NCBI RefSeq assembly: GCF_026571515.1
Contig: NW_026853658.1
Location: 1-64,000, forward strand
DNA from: Ruditapes philippinarum
Lineage: Eukaryota
Length of the DNA stretch: 64,000 bases
Direction of reading: 5' to 3'
Shown piece by piece: positions 33,181 through 61,632 of the stretch. The translations under genes were made by a program, and so were the position numbers. The notes below the pieces were generated by a model. The model was given only the letters and a program-made list of their open reading frames with translations. It was not told where the DNA came from and ran no database searches. The number at the start of each line of letters is the position of its first letter. Position 1 is the stretch's first letter.

Positions 33181-36100
33181 ATGTTCAAAATGGTGCACAC
33201 TTCTGGTGTATACATGTATTTGATTATTTTATGGATTTCATTATCTAAAGGTAAATAAATCTTATAATTAATCTTACCGGTCTTTTTTAGTGTTTCTTTT
33301 TTTTCCCAAAATGTATAAGATGAATCACTGTCGACTTAAATAAGACACTGATTCAGGTTTAAGTTGTGAAAGTGCACTGTATATTTTACAGAAATTCAGC
33401 AAGCGTCTTTCAGAAGAAATGTATGTGTTACTCATTGTTGTATTGCAAAATTGACCGTACAAAATGATTAATATATTCTATATACCTGTATTAGACTTGA
33501 AACTTATGACTACTTAAGCCTTTAGCTTGCGGGTGGCAATTGCTTTTACCCATGCGACCAGTACATATCATGGTCTGAGCTGTTTGCTATTCAGTCTCTA
33601 AATATCTTGGATTTTCTTCAAAATTGATTAAAAGTTTCGCTCAGATTGATGGAAGATGAGTCCATTTAAGATTTGTATCGTGGCAAGTTAAATAAAAATG
33701 TATGGGATGTTTCATTACCAATAATATTTGGCTTGTATCATGTGCCGCATTTTGTTAGATAATGGTAACAAATAATTCGATAGCGTATTGTAATGAATAT
33801 GTGGAATATAAACGTCTGAAATAAATACTAAGATTACGATAGGAATGTACAAAATCGAAAAGAATATATTACATCAATTTACATTAATTTACATAAATTA
33901 ACATAAATTATTAAGTATCACCCAGAGGTTTAAAAACGTTGTAACTTCAGATGTTCATTATAAAGACTACTAACTATCGTTTTGTTGTGTTGTGTTATAT
34001 GATATTTTGATTTTATGTTACCGTTTAACGAATGATACTCTTCAACACAAAAAGAATATCGTGTTAAATAGCTACATTAAGTTTACATTTAACGACATGA
34101 AACCTTACAAATGGTATATGGTAAATGTTTCTTTTTTCTTTTTTTTTGAAAGTTTTATATAAAAAAGTGAACCGTTTTATGTAAGGAAAAATAATTTCAT
34201 GAGATAGTTATAGTGTAATATGGACGTTTCTAACTTTGCATTATTGACATGAACATGAACTGATTTAGCAACATCAGTCGTTCTGTCATCGTTTGTAAAA
34301 TCGTGTATGATAAAATGATGAAGATAGGGTGATAAAATGAATAATGATAGACCTTATCACTGTCTGAACGCTTCGGCGTTAGGAGCTTGCTTTGCAAACA
34401 AATTTCAAATTCCATAACCTGACTGTCTAGATGCCTTTTAATCATGATGACAAAAAACACAGAAGTATGAAAATTAACTTCACGTTGTAGGTACTGAATT
34501 TATATCTCAAAATGAGACAACATGGAAAGATATAACTACAATTTGCCAGGTTGCATTGCCCGAGATAAATTACAAGGCATTCATGAACGGGAAGGAATTT
34601 CTTGTAGACTATTCTGGAAAAATTGAAGAGCAAAATGGTGTATGGGTGGGCTACTATCTATCTGCTGCGCCGTTTGAGTATATTGGTAAATATGAATGCT
34701 ACTTAATTTCACTGCTTAAGTTGTAGTAGATTGAGGTCGTCAAAATCTATTCAATGGGTATAATGTAAGAATGTTTCGTTTCAAATTATCTGTGTACCAA
34801 ATATAAAATATACTCTTTTGATTTAATTAAACTGTCGGTTTTACGTTATAGAAATAAAGACACATCTTGGAGATAAAAAGAAAATCAATGTTATTTATGC
34901 TGTCGTTTTTAAGTAATGTAAATGAGTAGTTGTGATGTTGGAAGTTTTCACTCACGACATAAACCTACATTTACATTTTCCAGAACCAACAAATCGCTCC
35001 TGGGCAGGCTGTCAAGCAGTTTTCCAGTACTAGTTGCCTTCACTTTCGCAAGCGACCGAAATTCTGTATATTACAGAGCAGAGTTACAGTGCGGGTGACC
35101 GTGAAAAAGCCTTCATTATCGACCGATTAACGATACAACGATCTATTATTGAACAAACCGGACTGTCTGTAATGAAAATGATCGATGGCGTGATGAAAAT
35201 GAAGTTTAAAAGATTATAGGGACTTTTGATTTGTTCATACAAGCTACCAAGCTAGCTAACGGAACATTGGTCGTTCTACTCAGTTGCCCGTCTGTGCCTG
35301 AAAAAAATGGATGGAGTAGCATCTGAGGTCTACTTCCACGTGTAAAGCTGGAAAATTGCCGTATGGTATTTACAGTATTGAGCGACGTTAAACCCAACCA
35401 AACACGGAATACATTTCTATATGCAACAATTAGTACTGAATACTAAACTACATTTTATGTTGATTTCACGGAAGTATTCTTTCAATGTTTTTATTCCAAA
35501 TTTAACTGATTTATTATATCAATTGCAGGCTGTTCTATTCTTGAAAAGGGGACAGCATTAGCTCAGTTCGATCGAAATACACCAGGACTGTGCTTTTCGG
35601 CTTGTCAGAAGAAAGGGGTGATAGGTATTAATGATAAAAAGGTAGGAATTTGTTTTCAAACAGTGATTTCATAATAAGCATTAGTTGTGTTATTAACAAA
35701 TTGGACGATGAAATGTATATATTTACCAAAGAAGTACTTTTTGTACGGCAAATTCATGTATCACTTGGATCAATTTTGTTAACATTTCAGTGCTTTTGTT
35801 TGAACAGTATCAGCGGATTAGACATTTTTGCTACAAAATGTAATACAGAATGTAAAGATCAGTCCAATATTGAATGTGGTGGAGAAGAGCATATGTCGCT
35901 ATACAAACTCAGTATTACTGGTGAGTCTTTACACCCTCTCAAAAGAAACATTAGCAATATGAAATCGTAATAACTAAATACAAAGGAAATTTTGGAGAAA
36001 AACAAATGTTTGAGGATGACAGGTAGTTTTGGGGTTACAAATCAAGACATTCTGATTCTACTATATTTGTTTTTTATATTTATATTCATTTAACTAACAT

Positions 36101-39100
36101 TGACTTTTTCTGTGTTGTCGTTCCTTGTCTATATTTAGCCTAGATATCGCATTTGCCGGCAGATGCATTACCAAGAATATTAATGGCACGTGTGTTTTGA
36201 ATTACCTCACCAACATAGCAAGATCAAGCAAACGCTTTCCTGTTAGTTGTATATACACGTAATAAACATTTATAACATTAAACAATTATTACATTTACAT
36301 TTAACATTTACTAAATTCAACTAGCTTTAATTAGGCAAAATGTTGAGTTTTAAAAAGAAATCATATTTGTAGAGTTTGAAGCAAAATATGAAGACGATGT
36401 TGGAGTGTGTCTGTCGTATCAGATAAACAGTAACGTACAGAGTTTCTATTGGAATAGTTGCGCAATAACAATTCAGACAATATGTGCATCGAGTAAGATT
36501 CAGCAATACTTTTCTAACAGGACAGTATATTCTATCTTTATATATTAAATACTTTTCAACTCATCTTCCTCGAAAAAAAAGTAAAAAACTGATAACAAGA
36601 AAAAGGATAAGTGCATATAAACAGTATTATGAAACAAAAAGTCAATAGCCTTCAAAAACGTTCATAAATTAAACATTTCAATTGTGATGTAATATTTACT
36701 ATATTTTTTTTTCATTTATATTAAGATAACGGATCCGTTCAAGAACTTTCTAGTACTACTAAGACTACATCAACAAAATGGAATTTGGCTATGAACTTAT
36801 GCTTGCAAAATTCAATGACCCCAACGACAATTACGCAACTAGAACAATTTAAAGGACGTTACAGACTTACACCATCATGGACAGGGATTATTTCAAGTGA
36901 TGTTATTTATTCAATACACGGTGCGTGGTTCCTTTAGTTTATATATACCATGTTATTTTGTTTGTTTGCCCTGACGATATAAAAACCTGTCGGGATCATA
37001 TTAAAATGAAAAATGTTTGTTAATGTTAATATTAAGTATAATTTTCTTGTTATGGTTTTTTAGATTTACCTTCGCTATTTATGCATGAAAAGTGTTTACG
37101 CATGATTAATTTTAGCCTAGATCAACGATATTCAATCTCGGTAAACTGCAGACGGTTGAACAGTCCATTATTTGTTTACGGAGATAATTGATCATCGTTT
37201 ATCCATTTGAGGAAAATGTAAATAAAAATGCTTTGCAACAAAGCAAGAAATTTTAAATTGGTCCTGAAGTGTAAAGCTGATGAATGTGAATGTTTTAATA
37301 TACGACTCGTAAAGTTAATCGTGTCATTCCGCAATAAATCATGCGAATTTTTTAAAGTTCTAAAGGACTCAGCTGCTTTGCAGCCGAATTATTCAGATTG
37401 ACGTTACCTTCAATTTGTTTGCTCAAGATAGGTTCAGGATAACAAACTTATAGGAGTCAGCTGTTCATTACATTTATACTCTATTTGAATGTATAGGACT
37501 TTTTCAAATATTAGAAAATGCTAGGATCTTACTATTATAGATGACAATTCGCCTTTTCATGTTTGCCAAATTTCTAATAGACGTGGCAAAGTAAAGGATT
37601 TTTTTGCACAAAATATTGTTTTGAAGAAATCATTTTATTTTCCAATTTGACTTATAAAATTAACAAAGTGACGTGAGCAACAAAAGATTAAAGATTTTCA
37701 CACTTTTTTTCATCTTATAACATTTGAATATCCATTATCAAGAATCATGAAAAGTACATCTATTCAAACAACAATAATCAGTCCAGTTTGTGGGATTAAA
37801 CAAGTCAACGAAATATAAAACACTTTACCAGTTTAAAGGATTTATGGCTATAACACTTCAAATTTAAGATATATTGAATGTGATGTTTTTAGCATGCGTT
37901 TCAAACGTACATTATATTGTATTTTTGTAAATCATTTTCTCTATATTTGAAACATTTTTGTTTTGTTTAATGCTAGAGAAAAATTGTTTATATTATATAA
38001 GTAAAGCCCAAACCCTCTCACACCCTAAAACAAAAATAATTATTTTATTGATGTTCTTTTTCAACAGATGCTGCTGCTACACATAATAATTCCAGAAAAC
38101 AGTTCGGTTATCTTACGCAGAAAGGAGATACTATCCTGCTACAATTTGATGACAAAGTCTCTTCATCAAGAAAAATTCTATGTAAAAGCGGTAAAATAGT
38201 TTTTCTCCTTTAATGTCACTGTTACATTAAAATAATTAAAAAATGTATATACATAATCCTTTGAAGCTCTAACAACAAAGCGTATTTACGGGCAAAGACT
38301 GCCATAACCTCTTCTACATGAAATGAAATCATGATTTTTCTTAATTCGTCTTGTAATTGACGACAATTGCACTCTTTCGAATTATTGACAACACTCCTGA
38401 TAAGTAAAGGGACTCCACTGAGGTCAAAAAGCCTAAAACATATCATTTGAATTTCTTTCGTAAATGAGCCGGGGCACTTTAAATAGAAATATTTGAAGAG
38501 AAACTTAAGAAATATACTTTGAAATTAATTGAAAATCGTAGTTTTATGCTCTTCTGAACCCGATTTGAGTGAAAAACGTTAAAACGCTTTTCATTTTGGG
38601 TCATTTTTTTACATTTTGAATAATTATTCTGAAAAAAAAAAAACGAAGTGAACGAATGATCTGAAACTTTGCACAAAGATTAGTGGTCTAAACCTACATC
38701 AAATGGTACATTTATCAGGAAAAATATTTTCAGTCCCATCATGTCAAAAAACCTCAGTGGAGTCTCTTTAAAACTTTGTTTGGTTAGGATAGACTAGTTT
38801 CAGTTTATATGAATTTATTATTTATCCTAAAAGCCATAACCAGTAATAAGCTATGTAAAAGTTTCTTGCTCATGGAAACAACAGCTTGACCATGACAGGG
38901 TTTGAACCCACTCCGCCAGCAATCCTTAGAATACTACTTTTAGCCACACCGCGATTTATTGTTATAATATGTATGGTTGAATACTATAAGAATCTTACAG
39001 ACCCGAATATATTACTCGAAAGTAATTGTTAACCGAGAACTAGATAAACGCGTCCGTGACAACAACCGGTGTTTGATTCTTTTTCTTGCATATTACATAT

Positions 39101-41007
39101 AAATCATATTTTTAAAAGAAATTCTTGATGTAATATTTGAGCTTAGCATATTTCTTATAGAGGCGCATGAATTTCCAACTTCATTCATAGTGGCAAAATG
39201 ACATCATTTTAACGCTATTTATCCATAAAAGGCGCGAGAGAATGGCGTCTTTTAAATCACGGAACTTCACTCACACGAGGGGAGTAAGGCAGGGATTTTA
39301 GCACCACTGTAAACCGTAGATAATCATGTCTGATATATCAAATTCCTTTAAGTAAATGCTGTAAACGAAAAGCTTGTTGGATATGGCAAGGGTTGGAAAT
39401 TGAGAGAATTAGTTGAAGGTCACATTGTAATTCATGTAAGACGCTGGTCACACTGTTGTTTTCATATTTTGATGTTTCAGGAAAAACTAAAAAAGAATCC
39501 AATGGTAAGAGTTTAAGAACGGAAATAAGTATATTCTTTCCATATTTTTTCTCGAAAAGTAAATTACGTTAAATGGATGTGTGAAAGCAAACATAAGAAA
39601 AATTTGCTTTTTAGCAAGATTCAGATATTTTTAATAATGATGTGTTAAACGCAAATGAAATATAAAAACAATTTTGAAGGATATATAATACACTTTTGTA
39701 AAAGTAACAAGTTGAAAATTCTCTTTATGTTAATGTTTCAGTTGATACGTAACTATTAAGATTTTTTGAAAGAAATAATGTGCAGTTAGTGAACAAGATA
39801 TACTTTACTAGCCGAGATAATATACAAGTACATTATTTCAGAAATAAGTTCATGCAGTTGTTATCAAGATAAGCATTTGAACATTATGTTTTGTCCTCGA
39901 TAGGCTCAAATGTCGGAGTAGCTGTTGGCATTTCAGTTGTGATGGTTTTAGTTATAGTAGCGGTGGTCGTAGCAGTTTTTATTTTAAAAAGAAGGTAATG
40001 TTTGATTTCAAAATCTGTTTCCTTTTTCAATGAAATTCATATACATAAATTGATGATTTAGAAAAACTACATTTTTTAAAAGTGATTGTGATATTTGTTA
40101 TTCAACTTTTATTTATTTCAAAAAAACATATGATTCGGAATATAAAACATATTAGTTAGGTATGGATATGGTTAACATATCTACCGAAAAAATAAATATA
40201 AGTTGATAGTTTGAACCAATGCTATTCGTGTAACATTGTTAGTGCTGAAAACATTTGTTGTTTAGAAACTCAATGTTTGGTACGAGTGTAAAGACTTTTA
40301 ACTAAGAACCTCAGTGTCTTTTGCGATATTATGATAGATAAGTCACGAGAGCTAATATATAAAGACAGTAATAAGATATTTAATCCATTTGCATGTGTTT
40401 TATTTACAGAGGAAAACTTGAAGGCATATGTTTTAAAATGCCTACAAATACTAAACCAGTACAGCGAACACAACATTTATCAATAGTTCACAAAAACACT
40501 TACGAAACGCCTACTGATTCTCCTTATAACGAGATTGATGATGCTACTTTACAAAAGAACAGCGATACAAAAAATGATACCTTTGAAAGTAACGGACATT
40601 ATGCTCACACTTATTTTGTTTTGGAAGGCCAGGAATCAGATCCTAAAGTAGAAAATGGCATTGCTAATTCTAGACATGAAGATAGTAACAGCGAGTACAA
40701 CACATTGAGTTCAAATATAAAGCGTGGAAACAATACTAACAATGCATATGACACGACAGAGAACGCAATGAAAAGACTGAAAGATCAACATGATAAAGGC
40801 ATTGATGATATGAAGGGTAACAATTCTGACGACATTGAGGAAGATGCTTACACTCATATTAGTGATGCAGCTCTGAAGAACAAAAGAACAGATAATTATT
40901 ACGGTGTACCATCGAGTTGTGCTGAAAACGAGTATGGTGATGTCAGAAAAAGTAATGGAAATGCTCAACAAGGTGACGGAGATCCATATAATCATATTCA
41001 CGTTTAA
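33181..41007 (+). CDS. Receptor D: complete CTLD[WSC]-CTLD type I membrane receptor with Tyr-rich tail, 552 aa
   Basis: Ten GT-AG exons: 33181-33250, 34491-34685, 35529-35641, 35791-35920, 36373-36492, 36726-36920, 38068-38190, 39481-39504, 39904-39994, 40410-41007. They total 1659 nt in one open frame (alternative start at 33190). Signal peptide, VWVGYY, 8-Cys WSC, WNSC, SWTGII, TM GVAVGISVVMVLVIVAVVVAVFILKRR. Confidence 0.92.
35215..35402 (+). mobile_element. SINE 3' half (V-SINE-like)
   Basis: ggtcgttctactcagttgcccgtctgtgcctgaaa...gcatctgaggtct...aaagctggaaa...gcgacgttaaacccaac resembles the V-domain SINEs of bivalves (from memory). Confidence 0.6.
38408..38767. mobile_element. Kolobok-like MITE
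   Basis: TIRs AGGGACTCCACTGAGG ... CCTCAGTGGAGTCTCT, flanked by GTAA and TTAA. Confidence 0.8.
38850..38952 (-). mobile_element. tRNA-derived CORE-SINE-like fragment
   Basis: tcttgctcatggaaacaacagc...gggtttgaaccc, with a B-box GGTTCAAACC on the minus strand. Confidence 0.5.
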
Positions 41008-43685: not shown

Positions 43686-46600
43686 ATGGCAAAAATGGCT
43701 GACATAGTTTTAATCATTGTATTTTGGATATACATATATAAAGGTAATGTATTAACTTATTTTATCTTTTAGATTATAGTATTTTGTAATTCATAGATTT
43801 AAGTACACGTATAACCTTCTGTAACATAAGTATAATAATTAAAATAGTAATTTGTAGAGTTAAGTACAAAATGTGAAAACTTCTTTAAGGCTGGCGTATG
43901 TTGGTGATTTATTTATTCAACATGGAGTTTAGTACACATTATTACAGATTTTACATGATTAAGCTAATGACTGTATGACACTAATGGATTTGAAAATAAT
44001 CACTTGATGTGAAATGTTTAATCGGTTGTTTTTGTTAATTGACAATTACATGTTGTTCTTCATATGTTAGCCTCAAACAATTTTTAAATAGTGTATCAAA
44101 CATTCTGGCTCATAAGTATGTGTATCCTTTACATACATAAACAATGGCGATTTAATCGGATGCGCAATTTCCATTTTTGTATGAATTCTTTCATTTCATG
44201 ACTTTCTACTATTGTGTGTCTGGTGAGAATTTATAGAAGATGACAGAAAGCGTGTAAATCGCAATAAAATTTATGTTTTATTTTATTATTATAATGTAAG
44301 GGTTTACCATCACAAGTATATCTAAGATACATGTATGAAATCGTACTGTAAATATAAAATAACCAGTCGCTAAAATACTACCTGACATAATTATTGCCCA
44401 ATAAAACCAATATTTATGAAGTATAATTTACAACATATATTATTAACTTCTCGTTGCTTTTAATGATTGCAAAAAGTGATGGATTGTAAATGTAAATTAA
44501 TTAAAATATTTGAAAGTATTTGATAGTGCGAAAATATGCTGTGGAACTTTAAACAAAACAAAAAGAAATTACATCATTGGTTCGCCCGTTTCGCTCAATA
44601 TTGAGATCATCGGTTTATTTTATTTATTTATTTATTAATTTATTTCATTTTTTATTTATTTATTTTGAGGCGCTGGTTCGATCCTCGGGCGAGGCGAAAT
44701 TTCTCCATAACAATTAAACTCAGACCATGAGTCATATTGTCATTTGTCTTTTGCCCTGATTCAGAAATCATTTAGGATAAAAAGTCAGTCAATTACAGTA
44801 AAATTAATATTTCTGGTTGGTTATCTGGTAAAGATGCAATGGTGATCCAAACGCCGATATATGACTAAAATGTGTTATAATCGGCGTTAAAAGCAAAACA
44901 AAATGGTTATTGAATGAGTGCAAGTTTAATACTGAATTTATTGAACGAGTTAAATAAAATAATATTATGCCAGCCTCTTGCATAATATTATTTTATTCAA
45001 CGAGTTCAATAAATTCAGTAATTAACTTACACGAATTTAATATTCTATTTATCAAATACTAAAAAATAAAGACCGCCTGTAGTATTACGCTAAAATTAAA
45101 CGCGTCTTAACGCTATGGTTGTATCATGGAAATGACGTCACGTCGAATTTTTAGGTAGTCGCAAAAACAGCACGGGTATTTGATAAAATAGAGGATATTG
45201 AATGAGTGTAAGTTCAATACTGAATTTATTGCACGAGTTGAATAAAATTATATTATGCGAGCCTCTGGCGAGCATAATATTATTTTATTCAGCGAGTGCA
45301 CTAAATTCAGTAATGAACTTACACGAATTTAATATTCTATTTATCACATACCCAAAATAAAGACCATTTAAAGTGAAATAAAAGTCATTTTTCATTGACG
45401 CGCTTATAGTATAACGCTAACATTTAGCGCGTCTTTACACTATGTTTGTGTAACGCTAATGACGTCACGTCAAAATATATGCACGGCCGTGCAATACCAT
45501 TTTTACGGAGTCGCAAAATCGGCACGGGTGTGTGATAATAGATGATATTGAATAAGTGTAAATTTTATACTGTATTTATTGAACGACTTGAATTATATGA
45601 TATTATGCGCGCCTCTGGCGAGCATAATATTAATTTATTCAACAAACAAGTTCAATAAATTCAGTAATGAACTTACACAAATTAAATATTCTATTTATCA
45701 CAGACCGTTAGAAGTAAAAAAAAGAACCATTTTTCATTAAATGTGTCAATAGTTGTCTTCGTTGTCGAAGAAATAATAAACAAAACAACAACAATACATT
45801 ATCAAACAAAAAATTTTAAAAGCCTGAATTGTGGCTAGTGACCCAATGAACAAAAACAAAAACCACGTGACAAACTTCTATTTGTCATCTTTCATTTGAT
45901 AATATTGATAAAGAAGTAAAAATACATCATTTATTCAGTATTTTAAGATCATTATCTCCACAAAATAGAACAGTTAATTATACTTAACAATAAAAAGATA
46001 TCTGAAAAAGCAAGGTCCCGTGAAAACAAATAAAGGAAATATAAATTATTTAAATTCTCTGACGCGACTTTATTTATTATCTTTGATGCACGATAATTAT
46101 TAGTGCAAAAATTCCTAGACACCTAGGCACCGACGTAAGCGGTATTCAGTGTCAAAACTATAAGTTTTTGATCCCAAAAGAAGCAGAAAATATGATAATA
46201 GATTTTACAACTAAACACAACACGTAAGACCTAATTGTATTATAATAAAAGAAATTGCATCATCATTGGTATAATATTTTGTCTTGCTTTGAAAGGAGCT
46301 GCATTTATTACACAATATAACACAACTTGGGAAAATGCAATTAACAATTGCACAATGGAAACGCCTACAATCATGTTCCAAGGAACAAAGAAAGATTTAC
46401 CCGTAGCCATGAATGCTAGTATTATTGGAAACGAAGCTGTGTGGGTAGGATATTATCTAGCAGCTACAGCCTTCCATTATGTTGGTAAATATTAAAAAAA
46501 AACAAAAAAACAATTAATACATTAAACATGTTAAAATCTATGTTTTCGATTGAATTATGTAAAACAAAGAAAATTGAAAATGAAAGTAATTTATTAACAA

Positions 46601-49600
46601 AGGAGACAGATAAGGGAGATGTAAGGGTCTATGCATGTTGACTTGAACAGTCCTCGATTAGTTTCAAGGTTGATAGAATCTGTAAATAAATATAATAGTA
46701 CAGTCTCTTTATTTTTATCAAGTACAACATTTTCCAAGTTACTGAAAACCAGGTTTTAACAGGATTATTACGTGTACATAATTATTTTGGGAAATACCTT
46801 AAACCGTTAAATTTTTTCTTAAAATTCTAGGCTGTATAAAAAAGGAAAATATGGCTGCAACAACTGAGTTTGAGTACAACACTCCGGGCTTATGTTACTC
46901 TGCATGCAACAAGACATATTTGATAGGTGTCAGCATGTCAAAAGTAAGCCTTACTTTATATCGTGGATCAAGAAAGTTTATTTATTATTTAAAACACAAA
47001 CACTCATATTTATTACTTATGATAATAAAAGGTTAAGTTATAAATGTATGATTGCATTTGACGTAAAAAGAACTTTTGTGTAGAACCATTTAAACAGATG
47101 TGATCGCATTTACAATAAAATAGTATATTTCTAGAAACAAAAAAAATGGTTCTGAGCAGTCCTTTTTCTAAAGCTTTGTAATAACTAAAGTAAGTAACGA
47201 TGAGAGAAACACCTTTTCACGGCATATTTTAGAAAAAAGTGTACATCAATCAATATAGCGAGTGGATGTAACTTCATATACAAATAAAATGTACGGGCCA
47301 TAAATCCCTAATGCATATTTTCCTTTATAAATTGTAACCCTTTCGAGATGTTAAAATAGTACAAAGCAAAAAAAAAATGTGATTTTACAAAATTATTTTT
47401 TGTCATTCAGTGCTACTGCTTTAACAACACTATTCCATCAAACAGGGCATATCACTTATGTACTCAGGGTTGTAAAACGCAAATGAATATTGCTTGCGGC
47501 AGCAACAATTACATTTCAATGTACACTACTTACTCGTACGGTGAGAAATTTACAACTTAACTTGAACAATTGCATATAACACATATATAAACATTATTCA
47601 AAAGTAAGAATAAAAAAATGACTTTATACTATACATTTATCGTTGGACGTTAGACAATGGTCAATCAAGTAGAACGATTTAAAAACACCTTCTGCCTTAA
47701 TGATGTGCATAAAGTTTCGTGTCTATAAAATCTTAACACATTACGAAAAATCATGTAACATTATACGCATAGGTATAATACACAGATGTTCCTAATGTAG
47801 TTTTCATAGAAAATTGCATTGTTTCTTTCTTAAAACTTTTTTTCAGCAAATCTTTTTCAGTGGAAGTGGAGGTGTCTTCAATATGATTCAAAAATTATAC
47901 GTCCACATGGATGTGGGAAAAACTGGGATCAGAAATAGATCAATATGTAGATTTAGTTGAGAAACAAAAATGAAAGCATATTTATTACTTATAAAGGATA
48001 GTTTAAATAATCTAAATACATACAAATGAAAATATTTTTAATGTAAAAAAAAGGTAAATAATTAAAAGAATTTAAATTGATTATACTATTTGTTTTTCTT
48101 TATTAGTCAAAATTTTAGACTAAAAAAATGGTACGGAAAAGTATTCATTTGTATTTGCAACCATTTTCAAAAGTTTTTAAAATAAAAATCTCTATTTTTT
48201 CCAAGATACGTATTTCATGAAATATAAAGGAAAATGGAAAAAATAAAAAAAAAATGGGGAACCATCAAAGAACGAAATTTTTAAATTGTCAAAATTTTCC
48301 AACATCACAAAACCGAACAAAATTTAAAGAAAAAATAACCTTGGGAATATGGGGCTGGGTCATTTCAAGTACTTTTTACAACGGGGGTTAATTTATATTT
48401 ATTTTTAAGGCAAATAAGTATGCTATGGAAATTATTGTGAATCATTTTAAAGGAAGTAAAAACACACGTTGAAAAGAAGTTAAGAATTAACTATAAACTA
48501 GTTTCATACTGTGCCTCCGTAAATATTAAAGAAATACACTTCTTCAAATGATAAGAAGTACCGCTGTGATGTAGTAATTGTAGCAAAGGACAAATTATTT
48601 CATAACAATTTCAATTCCTAAATGTCACTTCAGATTTAAAAGGTTGTTCATAGGCGTGAATATCTAAGATATTTGTTAAATGTGTAATATCCATTTTAGA
48701 AACATATCTCATATAACAAATGATAATACACATTATTTTCTTGTGAATAGATCATAAACCTCCAAACATAACCCCGAAAAGGTTTGGCTACCTTCAAACA
48801 AACGAGGCAAATGGCACAGTATTAAAATTTGATAAAAATAGCACAAGCCAAAGATACAGCCTTTGTCAAAATGGTAGGAAAACATGATTATTTTATTTAT
48901 AAATGAATACCTGGATGATTTTGTTATATGGAAAAAGGTAATTACAACAAAAATGAATTATGTGTAATCAGTTTTAAAACCTGTCAATCATGTATCTTGT
49001 AATTTACGCATTTTTTTAATTGTTTCTGTGTTTCCACAGTAAATTGTTGCTACCAATCATGACATTTACTGATAATTAAATTGTTATTTTTTTTATTTTA
49101 TTTTCTTAATAAATCTTAATAATACAAATCGTTTCAATGCCATCATATGAAACCTCTTTTATATAAAACCACAAAATGTTTTAAAACTACAAGTCAAAAA
49201 CTAACAACAATGACACGTGATAATTATACTGTAGAATCAACAAAAAGTCCAGGTGATGATGAATCTAGTCCGATTACCAGTGCTTATTCGCAAAAAACTA
49301 CTATAGAAACAACGGCACCAGGTAGAATTACCCAATCAAAAACAGACCAAGCTAGTGCAACAAAAGGTAAAAATGATGTTTTAGGAGGCCATTTCTATTA
49401 TGGTAACGTTGGAGATAGATACACTTTGTGAAATAAATAATTATTTATTCATCGTTTCTATTGTGGCTTCTATTCTGGATTATAATTAAACTGATTTTGA
49501 TACATATATTCAATCAGCCGTTGCAAAAACAAATACAGTTTAGTATAAAGTCATCGAATCTATGATTTATTTCAGACTCAGATATTGGCATCGCTGTTGG

Positions 49601-55202: not shown

Positions 55203-58200
55203 ATGGGGTTTATGTTAGAAACATATTATCTTCTTCTATGGATTTTAATTGATGCAGGTAAAAGATTCATATTCAATTAAATTAATATATTTAACGGTCA
55301 CATTTGTAAAGTTTTTGTTAAGTAAAATAGAAAAAAAAACGATTGTAAATAAATATTTGCATTGTATAGTAATAACAGTCTTTACTTCTTGTCAAGAAAC
55401 TTAAAAGGAAGCTTATTCCTTCTTAAATAATGAACGTTCAGCATATGTTCTCTTGCTTTGTTTTTTTAAATTGATTAATGGATTCATTCATTCATTCATT
55501 CATTCATTCATTGAATTGAAAAACAAAGCAAGATATCATATGCTGAACTTTAAATAATTTAAATTTCAGCTTGCACGAAAATGTTTAGAATATAAGACCG
55601 TTTAAGTAATCATTCAATAAACTGTTTTGTAAAATTTTGTTATGTTGAATATAACGAAACACTTAAATCGTCTTTAAAAAAGATAAATCCATTTTTATAC
55701 ATAAAAATACGCTGTATAAATATCGGGTTGTAAATTATTAGATCTTATGTAAAGAAATTTTATGACATACGCTTATAAAAAGATATAATATTACAGATTT
55801 GATCACACTCGATCAATATCTCTCATATTTAATCTATTTACTTTTATATATTTTGATATAGTAAAGTTAACTTGTATGTAACAGTAACATATAAATGCAT
55901 TATAAGTATATGTAACATATCATCAAATCAAATATCAAAAGCATCATGCCGAAATATCTTGTAGAGACATTTGCCAAATGTTTTTCCCTAAATGATGAGG
56001 AAATCGTTAGTCGTATAGTGGTACATGTACACAGCAAAATATTTAAAACAAAACGGGTTTGCTATGCTAATCGTTTTTCTTTTATTCTTTTTGTAAGTTT
56101 GCCGTTGCTTATTTAGCACAAAAATATTGCTTTGATGTTAGAAACATCGATTTGAATGTATAATATTAATACACAAATTCACAAATTATCGTAGATGCTA
56201 CATTTATAACGGAATATAAGACAACATGGAATACAGCTATAGACAACTGTACAATGGAAACTCCTACAATTATGTTTGAGGGCAAAGAGGCTGATTTACC
56301 CGTTAAGTATGATTTGGCGGGAAAAGATGATGTTTGGGTAGGATACTATTTAGGAACAGCACCATTCCTTTACATTGGTCAGTACATCATTGGTCAAATT
56401 ATTATTCAAATAAACAAATAATATTCCTTTGCTTAAATTAATTATTTTTCTTGAAATGTGATGCTTTTTAATAAACGAAACAAATAATAAGAACATATAA
56501 AATGACTTGTTTAAAAATTGTCTTTAATCATCAAAAGCATTACCTAATTCAAGCATTTTTTCTCGATCTTATCATTTTCATTTTTAAATGAGAGCGTTAA
56601 TTACTAAAATGTCTTATCATAAATGAAGATCTGTGTCCTCATTTTTTACTTTGTGCCATTTATAAAAAGTGAATACATAGCTTCTGCATGATTTATGCTG
56701 TAAAACTTAGGTTATATATTCACGTGTTGCATTAACCCTGTTTGTTTTTTACCATCCTTACGACCCAAGAACACGTGATTAATTCATAAAATTCAAACTT
56801 TAAAGATGATGATTTTTAAAATATGTTGATTAATTAATAGGTATGTTATACATCTAAGGTTGTTTGCATGTGGAAGGTATGAGTGTAAAAGCAGAATTTG
56901 ATCACAACACTCCAGGCCTGTGTTATTCCGCTTGCAAGAAGAAAGGCTTGGTAGGCATTAGCCAAACAAAAGTAAGAAGAACATTTAATTTTATCTAAAA
57001 TAAAAAGGAATTTAAATACAGCAATGTTGTTTTGTTTTATATTCTGAATTTATTTCGTTACTTAAAGCGGTATCATTTATTTTTAGAAAAAAAAAATCTT
57101 TTATATTGTTTGCTTTGGTGTCTTTAAATTAATTTATTGATCATGGTTGCTATGATTTAAGAATCTGATGTTCGTTTTTGTAAATTTGCGTGTATTTACG
57201 TATTCCTTTTCTACTAGTTCATTTTATGGAAGTTTCTATTTTTGTCTGGTAATTCTTTTTTAAAATCTTCCAGTGCTTCTGTTTGAATGATGCTGATCAA
57301 TCAGAGATTCTCAACAAAGAATGTGACAAAGGATGTAAGGATCAAAAACATATTGCTTGTGGTGGTGATAACTATATGTCAATTTACAGAATCGAATCAG
57401 CCGGTGAGAATTTATCTTTACAAACCGAGGACAACATAATTATAAAATGTCTTTTTGAGTTTATTTCTTTTGTTACCATAGCTTATGTATTTCCTTACAT
57501 TATATAATTTAAATGAAACGTTACAGAAACATTTATTTTCAAACATACAGCACAGGTCTACAATGGAGAAAAGGATTGTTTACTCTTTGAAACAAACAGT
57601 GGCGGACCGAATCCACAGTGGGCGGACTGCACGAAACCTCAAAGAATCATGTGTACATTAAGTAAGTCATTATTATTTTACAGCATGCTTTTGGGTTCAA
57701 AGTAAACACATCAGAAATGATTTATAAAATAAAAAAAAACCGTATATATTTGAACAAAGTAAATATTAATAGACTATGAAATTATCAGGAATTTGGATAA
57801 AATCGTGATCACTATTGGTATAAGAATATTTAATCAAAATGCAAAATAATACAACCTGCAATGCAAAAGTAAGTTCATAGTCTTTTTAAAATATAACTCC
57901 TCACTTAATGTTTATTTTAAGGCTTTGACAAACATTTCATCCTTCATTATGTAAGTCTATTGATTCTTTTGTTTTGAAACTTTACGGTGTTAAAAATCCA
58001 AAAAGTGTTAAAAGTGTAAAGAAGTTGAAGCAATTTTGGGAAACTAAACACGAGAATGTCGAAAATGCATTATTTGTATATTATATGCATATTCATATAA
58101 TATGAAAGTATATAAAGACTATTACAGATGCAATGTCGTGTTTAATAACTCCATAGTCTACTTGAGCGCATTTTCTTTTAAGTTAATTATGCTATAAATG

Positions 58201-61200
58201 TTGTACAATATGATTTTAGCACAATATTGTTTTTATAAGAAAGTCTTTTTTCACAAAAACGGAAGCTTACCGTCAATATTTGTTGTAAAATGTCTGCGTT
58301 GTTTTGTTGCTGTCGTCTTAAATAGAATCATGTATTGTACACTTTCCTTTATTGCCATCAAATTCTTTATAATTTTCTCGTTAGACAATGGCACAGTTCA
58401 AAACGCGCTTGATAATAACGGTGACATTCAATACAACAGTTGGAAAGAATCAATGCAGATTTGTTTCGATCTTCAAAGGGCTCCTGCATCTCTAGAAGGC
58501 CTGAGAGGATTAAACATAATTACACCATCGTGGACAGGATTGATAAAAAGTGATGTAATATATAGCTACGGTAAATTCTTTTTGTTCTTTTTTAAGGGTG
58601 GGTGAGAGTGGGGATAAATCACAACGATACTTGCAACGTTCCAGCGAAGACTTGAAAAAACAATGACGTTCTGTACGTTTATTACCTCCCTCTATTGAAA
58701 TAATGAAAAACAATACTCTGGCGAGATTTGAACCACGTAGATAAACAGAAGTTGAATAATGAAATACTGTTAGACATCTAATACTCAAAATAGAAATACC
58801 ATACAATTATGTATACCATCAAGAAACATTTATTTTAACATGCTGTTATGTCAATTAAATTAGATACAAAATAATAAGATTCATTTGGATAAGGGCAACT
58901 GGTATTTTAATCAATAATTTTTCTAAAGAATCAATTTGTAATGAAATTATATGAATTGTGCATTTTGACGTTGCTCGATAATCGCCACTCTCGTGTAAGT
59001 ATCATTACTTTTGCTGCTCTTGTCGTATAAATTACTTATTCTTCATAAGTTTTTAAGTTGACAGTGCTTATGTGCATATATTTTCCTCGCATAAGTGTGT
59101 GAATAAAATAAACGGTGCAATCAATGAATTATTTAATTATTTCGCTGCAAATAATCGAAAATGACACTACCCGATACACTGTTAGTCATATTGAGGTCAA
59201 TTTTTATTTTACATTAATAATGAAAACAAGAAAAAATCGCAGCGCCAAATGACCGGCGAATAAAGCGGTTGGAAAACTAGAAAACAAGTTTCCGGTCTGT
59301 GTTTCAAAAAAGCTGCATTATTCATGGATAAAGCATAAACTTCGAAGTCGAATTACAGGTCTACGTTTTGCAAATTTAAACATGTGCACTTCAGACATTT
59401 TCCCAGTTTTTTGTTATGTATCTAGCTTTTTACTGGCTGGTCTTTAGGGACTATTACATTGAATTTGAACAAATGAAGCAAGTTCTTCTCTCATAAATTT
59501 TATCACCATATTCTTATTCAAAACTCGATATTTGAATCAATGTGTTCTTTCGCAAATTAGATGAAGCAGTAACTTCAAGCGTATATAAAAAGTGTGGATA
59601 CCTTGACAAGAAAAAGGGTGAAACCGTCTTAAAATTTGAAGACAATGACAAAGAAAAAAGGATTCTTTGTAAAAAAGGTAACTTTTTAACATATCTCAAA
59701 ATCACTACAAGAATAGATAACGTGCGAGTAGTAGCAACCTATTTTATTAGGAAGAAATATATGCATACGAAAAAGTTTACGTGTTTATATGTTTCACTAT
59801 ATTTTAATGGACAACTGAGACCACTTTATCATTAAGTTGACAGCGTCAAAGAAATAAAATTTGATTCTTTATGGAAACGAAATTTACACATTGGGTCCTG
59901 ACCAAGAAGACAAGTTGACATTTTTAGAATCAAGCTTTGCACTAAGTTTCTTGTTAAAGTAATTTTTAACTAAAAGTCAAATTGATATCAACATAATTGC
60001 TTTTTCGGCAAAAACATGGCATTACTTCGATCGTTAAATGTTAAAAAATAAACTGAAAGTTCACATACCCTTTTGGTTCACTGAACTTCTGTGTCCATTG
60101 ACAGGTTACTATATTTCAGCCGTCATTGTCATTTCTTCTTTTATTTTGACATTATAGGAAAAGATATCAACAAAACTATAGCAGATAGCAGTGGTGAGAA
60201 CTTAAATATGTTAATAAAAAAGGAAAATAAGTATTTATTCAATGATTTTAAGTATTAGTAAGAAACAAGAATAAGGTTTTTAATAAAAAGGTTTTAGCAA
60301 ATGTTATTATTCATTTCAATTACTTTTGCAATTATAGATTATGTCCAGTATAAAAGTTATAAAAGTATTTGAAAAATGATAAGTGTGAAAGGCAAATGAA
60401 AGAGTAACGGATAATTTCTAAAATCATATATGCCAAACTTTTTAAAATCTGTATTTTTGTACCTTACTGTTGTTTTATACCAAATCATTCAAATTGCGTG
60501 GCTTATAAAAATAACAGCTTTTAAAATATGTTATGTCTATAATAGGCTCAGATGTCGGACTAGTTGTGGGAATGTCATTGTTAGTGGTTTTAGTTATAGT
60601 AGCGATCGTCATAGGAATTTTTGTTTTAAACAAAAGGTAAAATCAAGTTAACATTTTATTATTGAAATAATTTACACGTTCTTATGATTAATCTGGCATA
60701 ATATTATTCAAAATGGACGAATTAGTTACCACAGGTCTGTGAATAAGAACATTTAATTTGACTCGGAAATATTGACAATTCGTAGTTTGTTAACTTCAGG
60801 TATATAAAACATATCATATGATCTTTCATTTGCTAACAGTTCTGATTGATACGCAAACCATATGCCTCAACTATCATTAGGTCAGTTTAAACAGTTCATT
60901 ATAAAGACATTAAATTGTCCCACATATTTGAAAAAGAATATTTTTTCTCGAGCTTTATATTAAGCATTTAATATATGAGTTGCAAACAACTATCATTTGA
61001 CGGATAACTGTTTTACTCCTATCATTTATGTCAATTTCAGAGGAAAACTTCAAGGTATTTGTTATAGCATTTCAACGCCCAAAACAACAGTTCAAACGCA
61101 AAATGTATCTGTGGTTCCAGACACGGCCTACGAAGCTCCTTCTGATTCTCCTTACAATGAAATCGATGACACAGCTTTGCAAAGGAGCACGGATACACCA

Positions 61201-61632
61201 GATGATTTCGATAAAGACAACGGAAATTATGCGCACACTTATTTCGTTTTGGAAGGCCAGGAATGGGATCGTCAAAAAGAAAATGGCATTGCAATGTCCA
61301 GACCTGGAGAGTCTGGCAACGAGTACAACACCTTGTGTTCTAATTTAAAGCACGGAAATAACACTAAACATACATATGACACGACAGAGAAAGCAGTTAA
61401 AAGACTGAAAGATCAACATGATAAAAGCATTGATGATATAAGATGTAACATGTTTGACGACGTGGAGGAAGATGATTACAACCACACAAGTGGTGAAGCA
61501 CTGAAGAACAAAAGAACAGATCATGTCTACGGCATACAAACTGGTGGTGAAAATGAGTATGGAGGTGTCAGTACAAATAATGAAAATGATCTTCTGGGAG
61601 AAATGGACACCTATAATCATATACAAGCTTAA
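55203..61632 (+). CDS. Receptor F: complete CTLD[WSC]-CTLD type I membrane receptor with Tyr-rich tail, 537 aa
   Basis: Ten GT-AG exons: 55203-55257, 56195-56377, 56859-56971, 57274-57403, 57551-57661, 58385-58570, 59561-59677, 60158-60193, 60546-60636, 61041-61632. They total 1614 nt in one open frame, with the same phases as D. Confidence 0.92.
55436..55548. repeat. 30-bp inverted repeat enclosing an (ATTC)n microsatellite
   Basis: gttcagcatatgttctcttgctttgttttt and aaaaacaaagcaagatatcatatgctgaac (2 mismatches) flank (attc)7. Confidence 0.85.

Follow-up and report, generated by a model that had tools for sequence, protein, structure and literature searches.

Predicted crosswise pairing of C-type lectin-like half-domains around a WSC domain in a bivalve receptor

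A stretch of 64,000 nucleotides from Ruditapes philippinarum (RefSeq assembly GCF_026571515.1, contig NW_026853658.1, positions 1 to 64,000 of the forward strand; hereafter the window) carries a gene, here called gene D, whose exons raise a question about protein folding. The sequence-only reading of this DNA had proposed that exons 2 and 5 encode the two halves of one C-type lectin-like domain (CTLD), with a WSC domain from exons 3 and 4 nested between them. Two further exons, 6 and 7, which were absent from that reading, were revealed by paralogue conservation (tblastx) and by RNA joints. Gene D was thus found to contain two N-terminal halves (exons 2 and 6) and two C-terminal halves (exons 5 and 7), and therefore the question was which of the halves pack together. 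Predicted structures and a pattern of cysteine loss suggested that the probable partners are exons 2 and 7 on the one hand and exons 5 and 6 on the other, so that an outer CTLD would enclose both the WSC domain and an inner, circularly permuted CTLD. This may well be the first natural case in a single chain of two CTLDs that exchange their C-terminal halves (a permuted CTLD and a WSC domain nested in another CTLD), with each half encoded by a phase-1 exon and the whole forming the head of a bivalve-specific receptor family with tyrosine-motif tails.

Half-domains and the WSC domain encoded by gene D

The window was AT-rich (about 30% G+C) and represented a piece of contig C2145 in a genome of 1.4 Gb. 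Exon boundaries were obtained from spliced contigs of two public runs (X1 and X2) of two studies, which covered the joints from exon 2 to exon 8 in frame. The RNA nature of these runs was only guessed; since their contigs were intron-free, they were taken to represent a spliced transcript. The joints 34685|35529, 35641|35791, 35920|36373, 36492|36726 and 36920|38068 were all present in the spliced contigs and all had GT..AG introns. About 0.23 of the sampled words were found in contigs, corresponding to the exonic share of the stretch. According to the sequence and the joints, the introns were of phase 1 at exons 1|2, 2|3, 4|5, 5|6, 6|7 and 7|8, and of phase 0 at 3|4. Thus, the two-exon WSC cassette was bounded by phase-1 introns on both sides, as had been proposed, and the positions and motifs that had been given for exons 2 to 5 (TW..C, VWVGY, eight cysteines and C..W..C..C) were likewise reproduced by translation and by the spliced contigs. 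The product of gene D was most likely a type I membrane receptor with an ectodomain built from six phase-1 exon modules (exons 2-7).

Exon 2 (34491..34685, plus strand, as for all exons of gene D; joint confirmed by contigs) contained the motifs TW..C and VWVGY and appeared to encode the N-terminal half of the outer CTLD, namely strand beta1, helix alpha1 with its cysteine and the strand WVGY that corresponds to the WIGL strand. When the exon-2 profile was compared with PDB sequences, the top 14 matches were all CTLDs; CD69 was the first (E 0.0014), and other matches included EBV gp42, CD94 and mucrocetin. The PDB alignment was in register; it began at the first strand, included helix alpha1 with its cysteine and extended to the WIGL strand. 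Similarly, when 20 ordinary CTLDs of this genome, each encoded by one exon, were combined into a profile (A3), hhalign gave a probability of 84% and an E value of 7e-6, with exon-2 columns 2-56 aligned to CTLD columns 14-70 of 134. In a whole-library search, the exon-2 profile (A1) also matched the canonical proteins P0027 (E 8.8e-8) and P0035 (E 9.2e-7), in which Pfam recognised eight and four Lectin_C domains, respectively. Judged by this homology, exon 2 can be regarded as a true CTLD N-half, in agreement with the sequence-only reading. The Pfam Lectin_C model (PF00059, gathering cut-off 22.6 bits) gave no match up to E 1 in ten full-length family members and none up to E 10 in single exons.

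Exons 3 and 4 carried eight cysteines in total. Exon 3 (35529..35641; joints confirmed) encoded the first half of the WSC domain with cysteines 1-3 and matched the family hidden Markov model with an E value of 8e-20, while exon 4 (35791..35920; joints confirmed) encoded the second half with cysteines 4-8. In an exon-by-exon Pfam scan of gene D the only match was a weak one of exon 4 alone to positions 50-82 of the 82 in the WSC model (PF01822; E 0.0097, 16.5 bits, the cut-off being 27.8 bits). The WSC domain was also the only relevant Pfam match in the full-length members, where P0026 reached 28.2 bits (positions 1-82) and the others 14.8-23.9 bits. Therefore, as had been predicted, standard scans reported the WSC domain only and missed the split CTLD in all ten full-length members.

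The WSC fold was recovered in the predicted structure of P0003, a paralogue whose gene lies about 80 kb along the same contig. A Foldseek search of this model against the PDB matched yeast Wsc1 (7pz2) with a probability of 1.00 and a TM score of 0.70, and a structure comparison with VIA gave Z 11.6 to Wsc1 (root-mean-square deviation, rmsd, 4.0; 93 residues aligned) and Z 10.8 to Kremen (rmsd 2.5; 83 aligned), with the WSC rows covering Z 10.5-11.6 and residues 70-162. In this predicted model exons 3 and 4 form a WSC domain that leaves the CTLD core where the long loop normally does, as proposed from the sequence. The phase-0 split between exons 3 and 4 coincided in model position with the split in other WSC genes of the genome. 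Genome-wide, WSC matches were mostly divided between two exons, with the split near position 45 of the model, and often formed long tandem arrays (e.g., on contigs C2098, C7740 and C720).

Exon 5 (36373..36492; joints confirmed; found at 18 loci) encoded a CTLD C-half with strands beta3-beta5, cysteines 2, 3 and 4, a C..W..C..C motif and a W.x.C motif. In hhalign it aligned to CTLD columns 99-128 of 134, in register (P 0.0097). Exon 6 (36726..36920; joints confirmed; found at 17 loci) encoded a second N-half with a W..AM..C helix, a second helix and an SWTG strand, and its alpha1 region was also aligned in register with CTLDs (P 0.005, namely 0.0054). Exon 7 (38068..38190; joints confirmed by contigs) encoded the second C-half, with the motifs FGYL, LKF and ILC. 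Searches of PDB sequences with the exon-5 and exon-6 profiles returned nothing relevant. The cysteine positions C1 and C4 were filled in both units, while C2 and C3 were present only in exon 5. Neither unit contained the long loop with EPN or QPD that, together with WND, marks a Ca2+-dependent carbohydrate-recognition CTLD, and exon 5 had W.x.C only. Instead, in the alignment and in the model the chain left the WIGL strand directly into the WSC domain or into a 12-residue linker. Thus, the view that the ligand loop is gone was borne out. With respect to the CTLD fold superfamily, whose elements run in the order beta1, alpha1, alpha2, beta2, long loop, beta3, beta4, beta5 and form two sheets, the fold was recognised in predicted models, and sequence homology was detected for exon 2 only.

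Pairing of the half-domains

Five lines of evidence pointed to crosswise pairing, namely the models of two proteins (P0003 and P0030), a fragment test, the parts of an ESM Atlas model and the co-loss of cysteines. The AlphaFold2 model of P0003, built from a 32-sequence family alignment, had a mean predicted local distance difference test score (pLDDT) of 85 and a predicted TM score (pTM) of 0.77; in its exon-6 region pLDDT was 91-97 at residues 201-250 and 93 at 251-260. When the whole model was compared with the PDB, Foldseek found the WSC domain alone, the split CTLD being invisible to this program. A wide VIA search returned about 45 CTLDs just below the WSC rows (Z 7.5-9.0, 85-110 residues aligned), and these matches always spanned residues 13-20 to 300-301, i.e., they began in exon 2 and ran to where exon 7 ends. 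The last strand of exon 5 (residues 195-198) and the first strand of exon 6 (201-204) were only two residues apart, in keeping with the hairpin that a permuted CTLD would have between beta5 and beta1. Moreover, the inner domain of this model contained every CTLD element, in the order beta3-4-5, beta1, alpha1, alpha2, beta2.

The second model was that of P0030, a Mercenaria protein (isoform X2) that skips exon 6. Since it has one N-half and two C-halves, the pairing ambiguity is removed. In its AlphaFold2 model the exon-2 core (residues 21-40 and 61-70) had pLDDT values of 92-94 and the exon-7 half 89-93, while the exon-5 half was at 45-58. About 45 CTLDs matched this model as well (Z 7.1-9.1, 75-93 residues aligned, rmsd 2.4-3.1 for most single-domain matches). 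These matches spanned residues 18-250 and ended in exon 7.

In the fragment test, the exon-2 and exon-6 halves of P0003 were folded with the exon-7 half as partner using ESMFold2 without alignments. The score was 0.60 (runs 0.57-0.61), as compared to 0.00 and 0.02 in the controls with a replaced partner. When the exon-2 half alone was replaced, the score fell to 0.00 and the partner pLDDT from about 70 to 28, which suggested that the exon-6 half alone does not hold the exon-7 half. The ESM Atlas model of P0003 pointed the same way. Its residues 164-262 (exons 5 and 6) matched Lectin_C-, Xlink- and FGE-type clusters over the whole part (TM 0.66-0.74, 79-91 residues aligned), while residues 200-303 (exons 6 and 7) gave only TM 0.42-0.44 with 51-54 residues aligned. 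The latter alignments were confined to the exon-6 part, with one row reaching residue 270. Thus, in this predicted model exons 5 and 6 form one CTLD-like unit and exons 6 and 7 do not.

The fifth line was independent of structure prediction. Three proteins (P0016, P0073 and P0076) lacked both the exon-2 and the exon-7 cysteine but kept the last cysteine of exon 5 and that of exon 6. The exon-7 cysteine was likewise gone in P0077, which belongs to the same clade but is truncated at its N terminus and covers the C-terminal part only. Conversely, all members that had the exon-2 cysteine and an alignable exon 7 (about 20) had the exon-7 cysteine. Since crosswise pairing joins exons 2 and 7, this pattern corresponds to the clean loss of a single disulfide, and together with the models it suggested a predicted bond between the exon-2 and exon-7 cysteines. 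A second, independent co-loss was sought in further family copies in the genome and was not found: L072 (G000:C11813:9500-19499) was a likely pseudogene, its exons 4 and 6 being interrupted by in-frame stops, and exons 5 and 7 were not found in L071. Word-based homologue searches with a capped number of candidates added too few new sequences to widen the cysteine census.

Taken together, these results suggested the following arrangement. The ectodomain would begin with the outer N-half (exon 2), continue with the WSC domain (exons 3 and 4) and the inner permuted CTLD (exons 5 and 6), and finish with the outer C-half (exon 7). Exon 5 would run through the two-residue hairpin into exon 6 to form the inner, circularly permuted CTLD-like domain, while exons 2 and 7 would form the outer CTLD, with its N and C termini adjoining the stalk. 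Both crossovers would be at the position of the long, Ca2+/sugar-binding loop of ordinary CTLDs; one of them would hold the WSC domain, and the second would be the linker of about 12 residues. The net result would be one chain with two CTLDs that lack the long loop and have swapped C-halves, with a WSC domain in one hinge. With respect to the domain-in-domain architecture that had been proposed, the CTLD was discontinuous with the WSC domain inside, but a second, permuted CTLD-like domain also appeared to be nested there. Exon 5 would then belong to this inner domain rather than to that of exon 2, and the outer CTLD would be closed by exon 7.

The sequence-only reading had instead placed exons 2 and 5 in one CTLD with the WSC domain in the long-loop position, which would leave exons 6 and 7 as an ordinary compact CTLD beside it. 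The exon order is most simply read in this way, and truncated database models, such as P0015, stop just after exon 5. By sequence, exon 5 also looked like a better CTLD C-half than exon 7, with its cysteines 2, 3 and 4 and the W.x.C motif. Moreover, the joined exon-2 and exon-5 columns of the database homologues aligned end-to-end with the CTLD profile over 93 columns (E 7.5e-6). However, exon 2 alone scored at least as high, and since the scores are additive, they were uninformative on pairing and showed only that the signal comes from the similarity of exon 2. In P0030, exon 5 was poorly ordered although exon 2 was free to take it, and the CTLD matches ended in exon 7 rather than in exon 5. 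Furthermore, exons 6 and 7 did not form one domain in the ESM Atlas model, the exon-7 half required the exon-2 half in the fragment test, and the co-loss clade would be left with two unpaired cysteines in two different domains. Judged by the refuting condition given with the sequence-only reading, namely that the exon-2 and exon-5 peptides do not pack into one CTLD fold, this pairing failed in the models. Thus, we considered this arrangement unlikely, and the earlier claim that exon 5 closes the exon-2 CTLD was probably wrong.

A different explanation is that the halves are exchanged between two chains, for example in a half-domain-exchange dimer, or that their pairing is switchable, the single-chain swap being one of several states. 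CTLD-like snake venom proteins, which dimerise via long-loop exchange, offer a precedent, and one of them (1iod) was among the P0030 matches. In addition, isoforms that lack exon 6 (P0030) or exon 2 (P0091) leave an orphan half that could pair in trans. This explanation seemed improbable, however, given the pTM of the monomer model with its high pLDDT over the whole ectodomain and the two-residue hairpin between exons 5 and 6, which favours pairing within the chain. It could also be argued that there is no CTLD in these proteins and that the WSC domain is flanked by lineage-specific cysteine-rich segments with chance CTLD-like motifs. The silence of the Lectin_C model in full-length members even at E 1 and the weak or missing profile similarity of exons 5, 6 and 7 to CTLDs would agree with this. 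Nevertheless, the exon-2 profile matched canonical multi-CTLD proteins at whole-library E values of 1e-6 to 1e-7 and had PDB CTLDs as its top matches, in register. Two models gave about 45 CTLD matches each, directly under the WSC rows, and the ESM Atlas structure search returned the Lectin_C, Xlink and FGE families. Therefore, the absence of any CTLD was highly improbable.

Several points weighed against the crosswise arrangement, apart from the sequence of exon 5 and its joined alignment with exon 2. In hhalign, exon 7 gave no signal against CTLDs (P 0.18 to 0.33), nor did it give any against exon 5. All statements on fold and pairing relied on predictions, namely on residue ranges, pLDDT and secondary structure, and the modelled proteins were paralogues, with an exon-2 identity of about 40% to gene D, rather than gene D itself. 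The alignments were shallow (29-32 sequences), and the AlphaFold2 and ESM models share training data and possibly a bias. In the models of both P0003 and P0030 the outer N-half had no helix alpha2. The fragment test was graded as weak support: its runs shared at least 82% of contacts with a partner pLDDT of at least 69, and in a calibration with a different setup, 51 of 78 solved pairs attained its mark, as did 2 of 108 mismatched ones. Finally, the cysteine-less proteins formed one clade in the tree (Shimodaira-Hasegawa-like approximate likelihood ratio test, SH-aLRT, 99), and therefore the co-loss counts as a single event.

Comparison with known proteins and possible origin

In its predicted fold, the outer domain resembled the canonical CTLD (PF00059) and especially the Ca2+-free type of NK receptors, such as CD69, LLT1, CD94 and KLRG1 (VIA Z 8-9, rmsd 2.3-3.5, 78-94 residues aligned). 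It shared with canonical CTLDs the W..A..C helix, the WIGL-type strand (WVGY) and a putative cysteine pair between the helix and the last strand. In contrast to them, the clam domain would be split by about 180 residues (the WSC domain and the second domain), and it lacked the long loop, the EPN/QPD motif and, in the models, helix alpha2. Moreover, NK-receptor CTLDs belong to type II proteins, whereas the clam receptor was probably of type I and its CTLD was undetected by Pfam. Compact CTLDs, such as the Link module and intimin/invasin, also miss the long loop, as did both clam units, and Xlink clusters were among the ESM Atlas matches. However, these compact domains are continuous in sequence and unpermuted, unlike the clam units as predicted.

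The WSC domain had its eight cysteines in common with those of yeast Wsc1 (7pz2), KREMEN1 (5fws) and polycystin-1, and its predicted fold matched the first two with Z 10.8-11.6. Polycystin-1 also combines a WSC domain and a CTLD in one ectodomain, as the clam family does. In all three proteins the WSC domain is a separate bead, whereas in the clam family it would lie inside the CTLD, in the hinge between the halves. The closest analogy to the swap itself was found in the CTLD heterodimers of snake venom (factor IX/X-binding protein 1iod and EMS16), where two CTLD units swap a segment and the position of the long loop serves as the hinge. The venom proteins exchange no more than the loop, and they do so between two chains, whereas in the clam protein the exchange appears to take place within a single chain and to involve the whole C-half of three strands, with an extra domain in one hinge.

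In a survey of bivalve CTLD proteins, which were found by their CTL domain, WSC was one of the additional domains in architectures restricted to bivalves (Saco et al. 2023, PMC10140915). Those proteins likewise combine a CTLD with WSC in a bivalve-specific manner and are suspected to act in immunity, but their CTLDs were detected by domain scans, while the clam family was invisible to Lectin_C models. Our full-text literature searches returned no description of a nested, split, permuted or half-swapped tandem CTLD.

Two routes could have led to this gene structure. A two-exon compact CTLD may have been duplicated in tandem, after which the WSC cassette entered the first intron between an N-half and a C-half. 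Alternatively, a block of WSC, C-half and N-half may have been inserted into a single CTLD. Every half-domain is an exon of its own with phase 1-1, and the WSC domain is a 1-1 cassette of two exons. Either route would give the observed order. The tight hairpin between exons 5 and 6 and the bulky WSC domain between exons 2 and 5 would then favour crosswise pairing. If this pairing is correct, the long-loop hinge of the CTLD, which is among the most studied animal recognition folds, can accept whole domains, and exon-sized half-domains can re-pair after duplication, which would provide a clear case from nature in which exon shuffling drives the evolution of a fold.

Because the termini of the outer CTLD would adjoin the stalk, the WSC domain and the inner domain would point away from the membrane. 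The WSC domain was the likeliest glycan-binding part since there was no C-type Ca2+/sugar site. Thus, a rigid double-CTLD body would hold the putative glycan-binding WSC domain off the membrane, and the tyrosine motifs of the tail would pass the signal.

The receptor family and the remaining exons of gene D

A search with the exon-2 profile A1 against 1.84 billion representative proteins matched 75 proteins, including full-length type I receptors that were 350-840 residues long and came from the genera Ruditapes, Mercenaria, Mactra, Dreissena and Mya. In the databases these full-length homologues were labelled only as 'uncharacterized', 'hypothetical' or 'WSC domain-containing'. In the genome at least 41 copies of exon 2 were found, and the order of exons 2, 3, 4 and 5 was kept in about 18 fetched loci, usually followed by exons 6 and 7. 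With so many copies, a conserved order and full-length homologues in five genera, the exon arrangement was not due to chance. The family thus comprises tandemly expanded, uncharacterised receptors of heterodont bivalves. Neighbouring genes of the array were 30-40% identical, and such a tandem, fast-diverging array would fit a receptor for recognition in innate immunity or in the sorting of particles. Since domain scans failed for all full-length members that were examined, CTLD censuses based on such scans likely miss this family, which represents an uncharacterised group of receptors in commercially important clams with a predicted glycan-binding head and a putative signalling tail. The Lectin_C candidates of the genome numbered more than 1100. 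In the proteins P0001, P0005 and P0066, A1 matched short repeated stretches (profile positions 5-33) of giant proteins with He_PIG/HRM domains, and these matches may be spurious.

Three other paralogues in the window had been reported to keep the order of exons 2 to 5, and this was true for two of them. In paralogue C (26664-24046, minus strand), which belongs to the clade without the exon-2 cysteine, exons 2-5 were in the same order. Exons 6 and 7 were not found downstream on the minus strand, and gene C looked truncated or rearranged. Paralogue F (56194-59676) also kept the exon order. Paralogue E (46295-47542) retained exons 2-4, but its exon-5 equivalent (47834-47970) was split over two reading frames and had lost the third cysteine. 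The database model of paralogue E (P0093, LOC132737464) was truncated to 169 residues and ended after the WSC domain. Gene A of the window corresponded to P0073. Besides P0030, which skips exon 6, another isoform lacking a half-domain exon was P0091 (isoform X2 of gene F, window 56879-61629), which skips exon 2. Because the phases of the half-domain exons are symmetric (phase 1), such skipping stays in frame, and splicing could yield heads with an orphan half-domain.

The remaining exons of gene D completed a probable type I receptor, with the signal peptide, the transmembrane helix and the conserved Yxx(L/I/V)-type tail motifs visible in the alignment; the signalling role is a prediction. Exon 1 (33181..33250) contained the start codon, with an in-frame ATG at 33181 or 33190, and the signal peptide, and ended in phase 1. 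It was identified from a loose end of an RNA contig upstream of 34489 that matched 33223-33248 with one mismatch and was followed by G|GTAAAT. Exon 8 (39481..39504) was a micro-exon of 24 bases with phase 1-1 that encoded a very short stalk; contigs continued into it from exon 7, and it had AG/GT flanks. At this position other members of the family had a long, Ser/Thr-rich stalk. Exon 9 (39904..39994) encoded the transmembrane helix and a KRR stop-transfer signal, with boundaries set by homology only and tblastx conservation with E, F and B. Exon 10 (40410..41007) encoded the cytoplasmic tail with conserved tyrosine motifs, and its boundaries were also set by homology only. It was 62% identical to paralogue F over 152 residues in tblastx, and the tails of database homologues were aligned to it as well.

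Finally, about 130 bases of intron 2 of gene D (34924-35054) had a read depth 100-fold above that of the exons in all four runs. The depth was 1696, 323 and about 250 in the first three runs, and many reads continued into unlike sequence on both sides. This segment was probably a dispersed, transcribed repeat.

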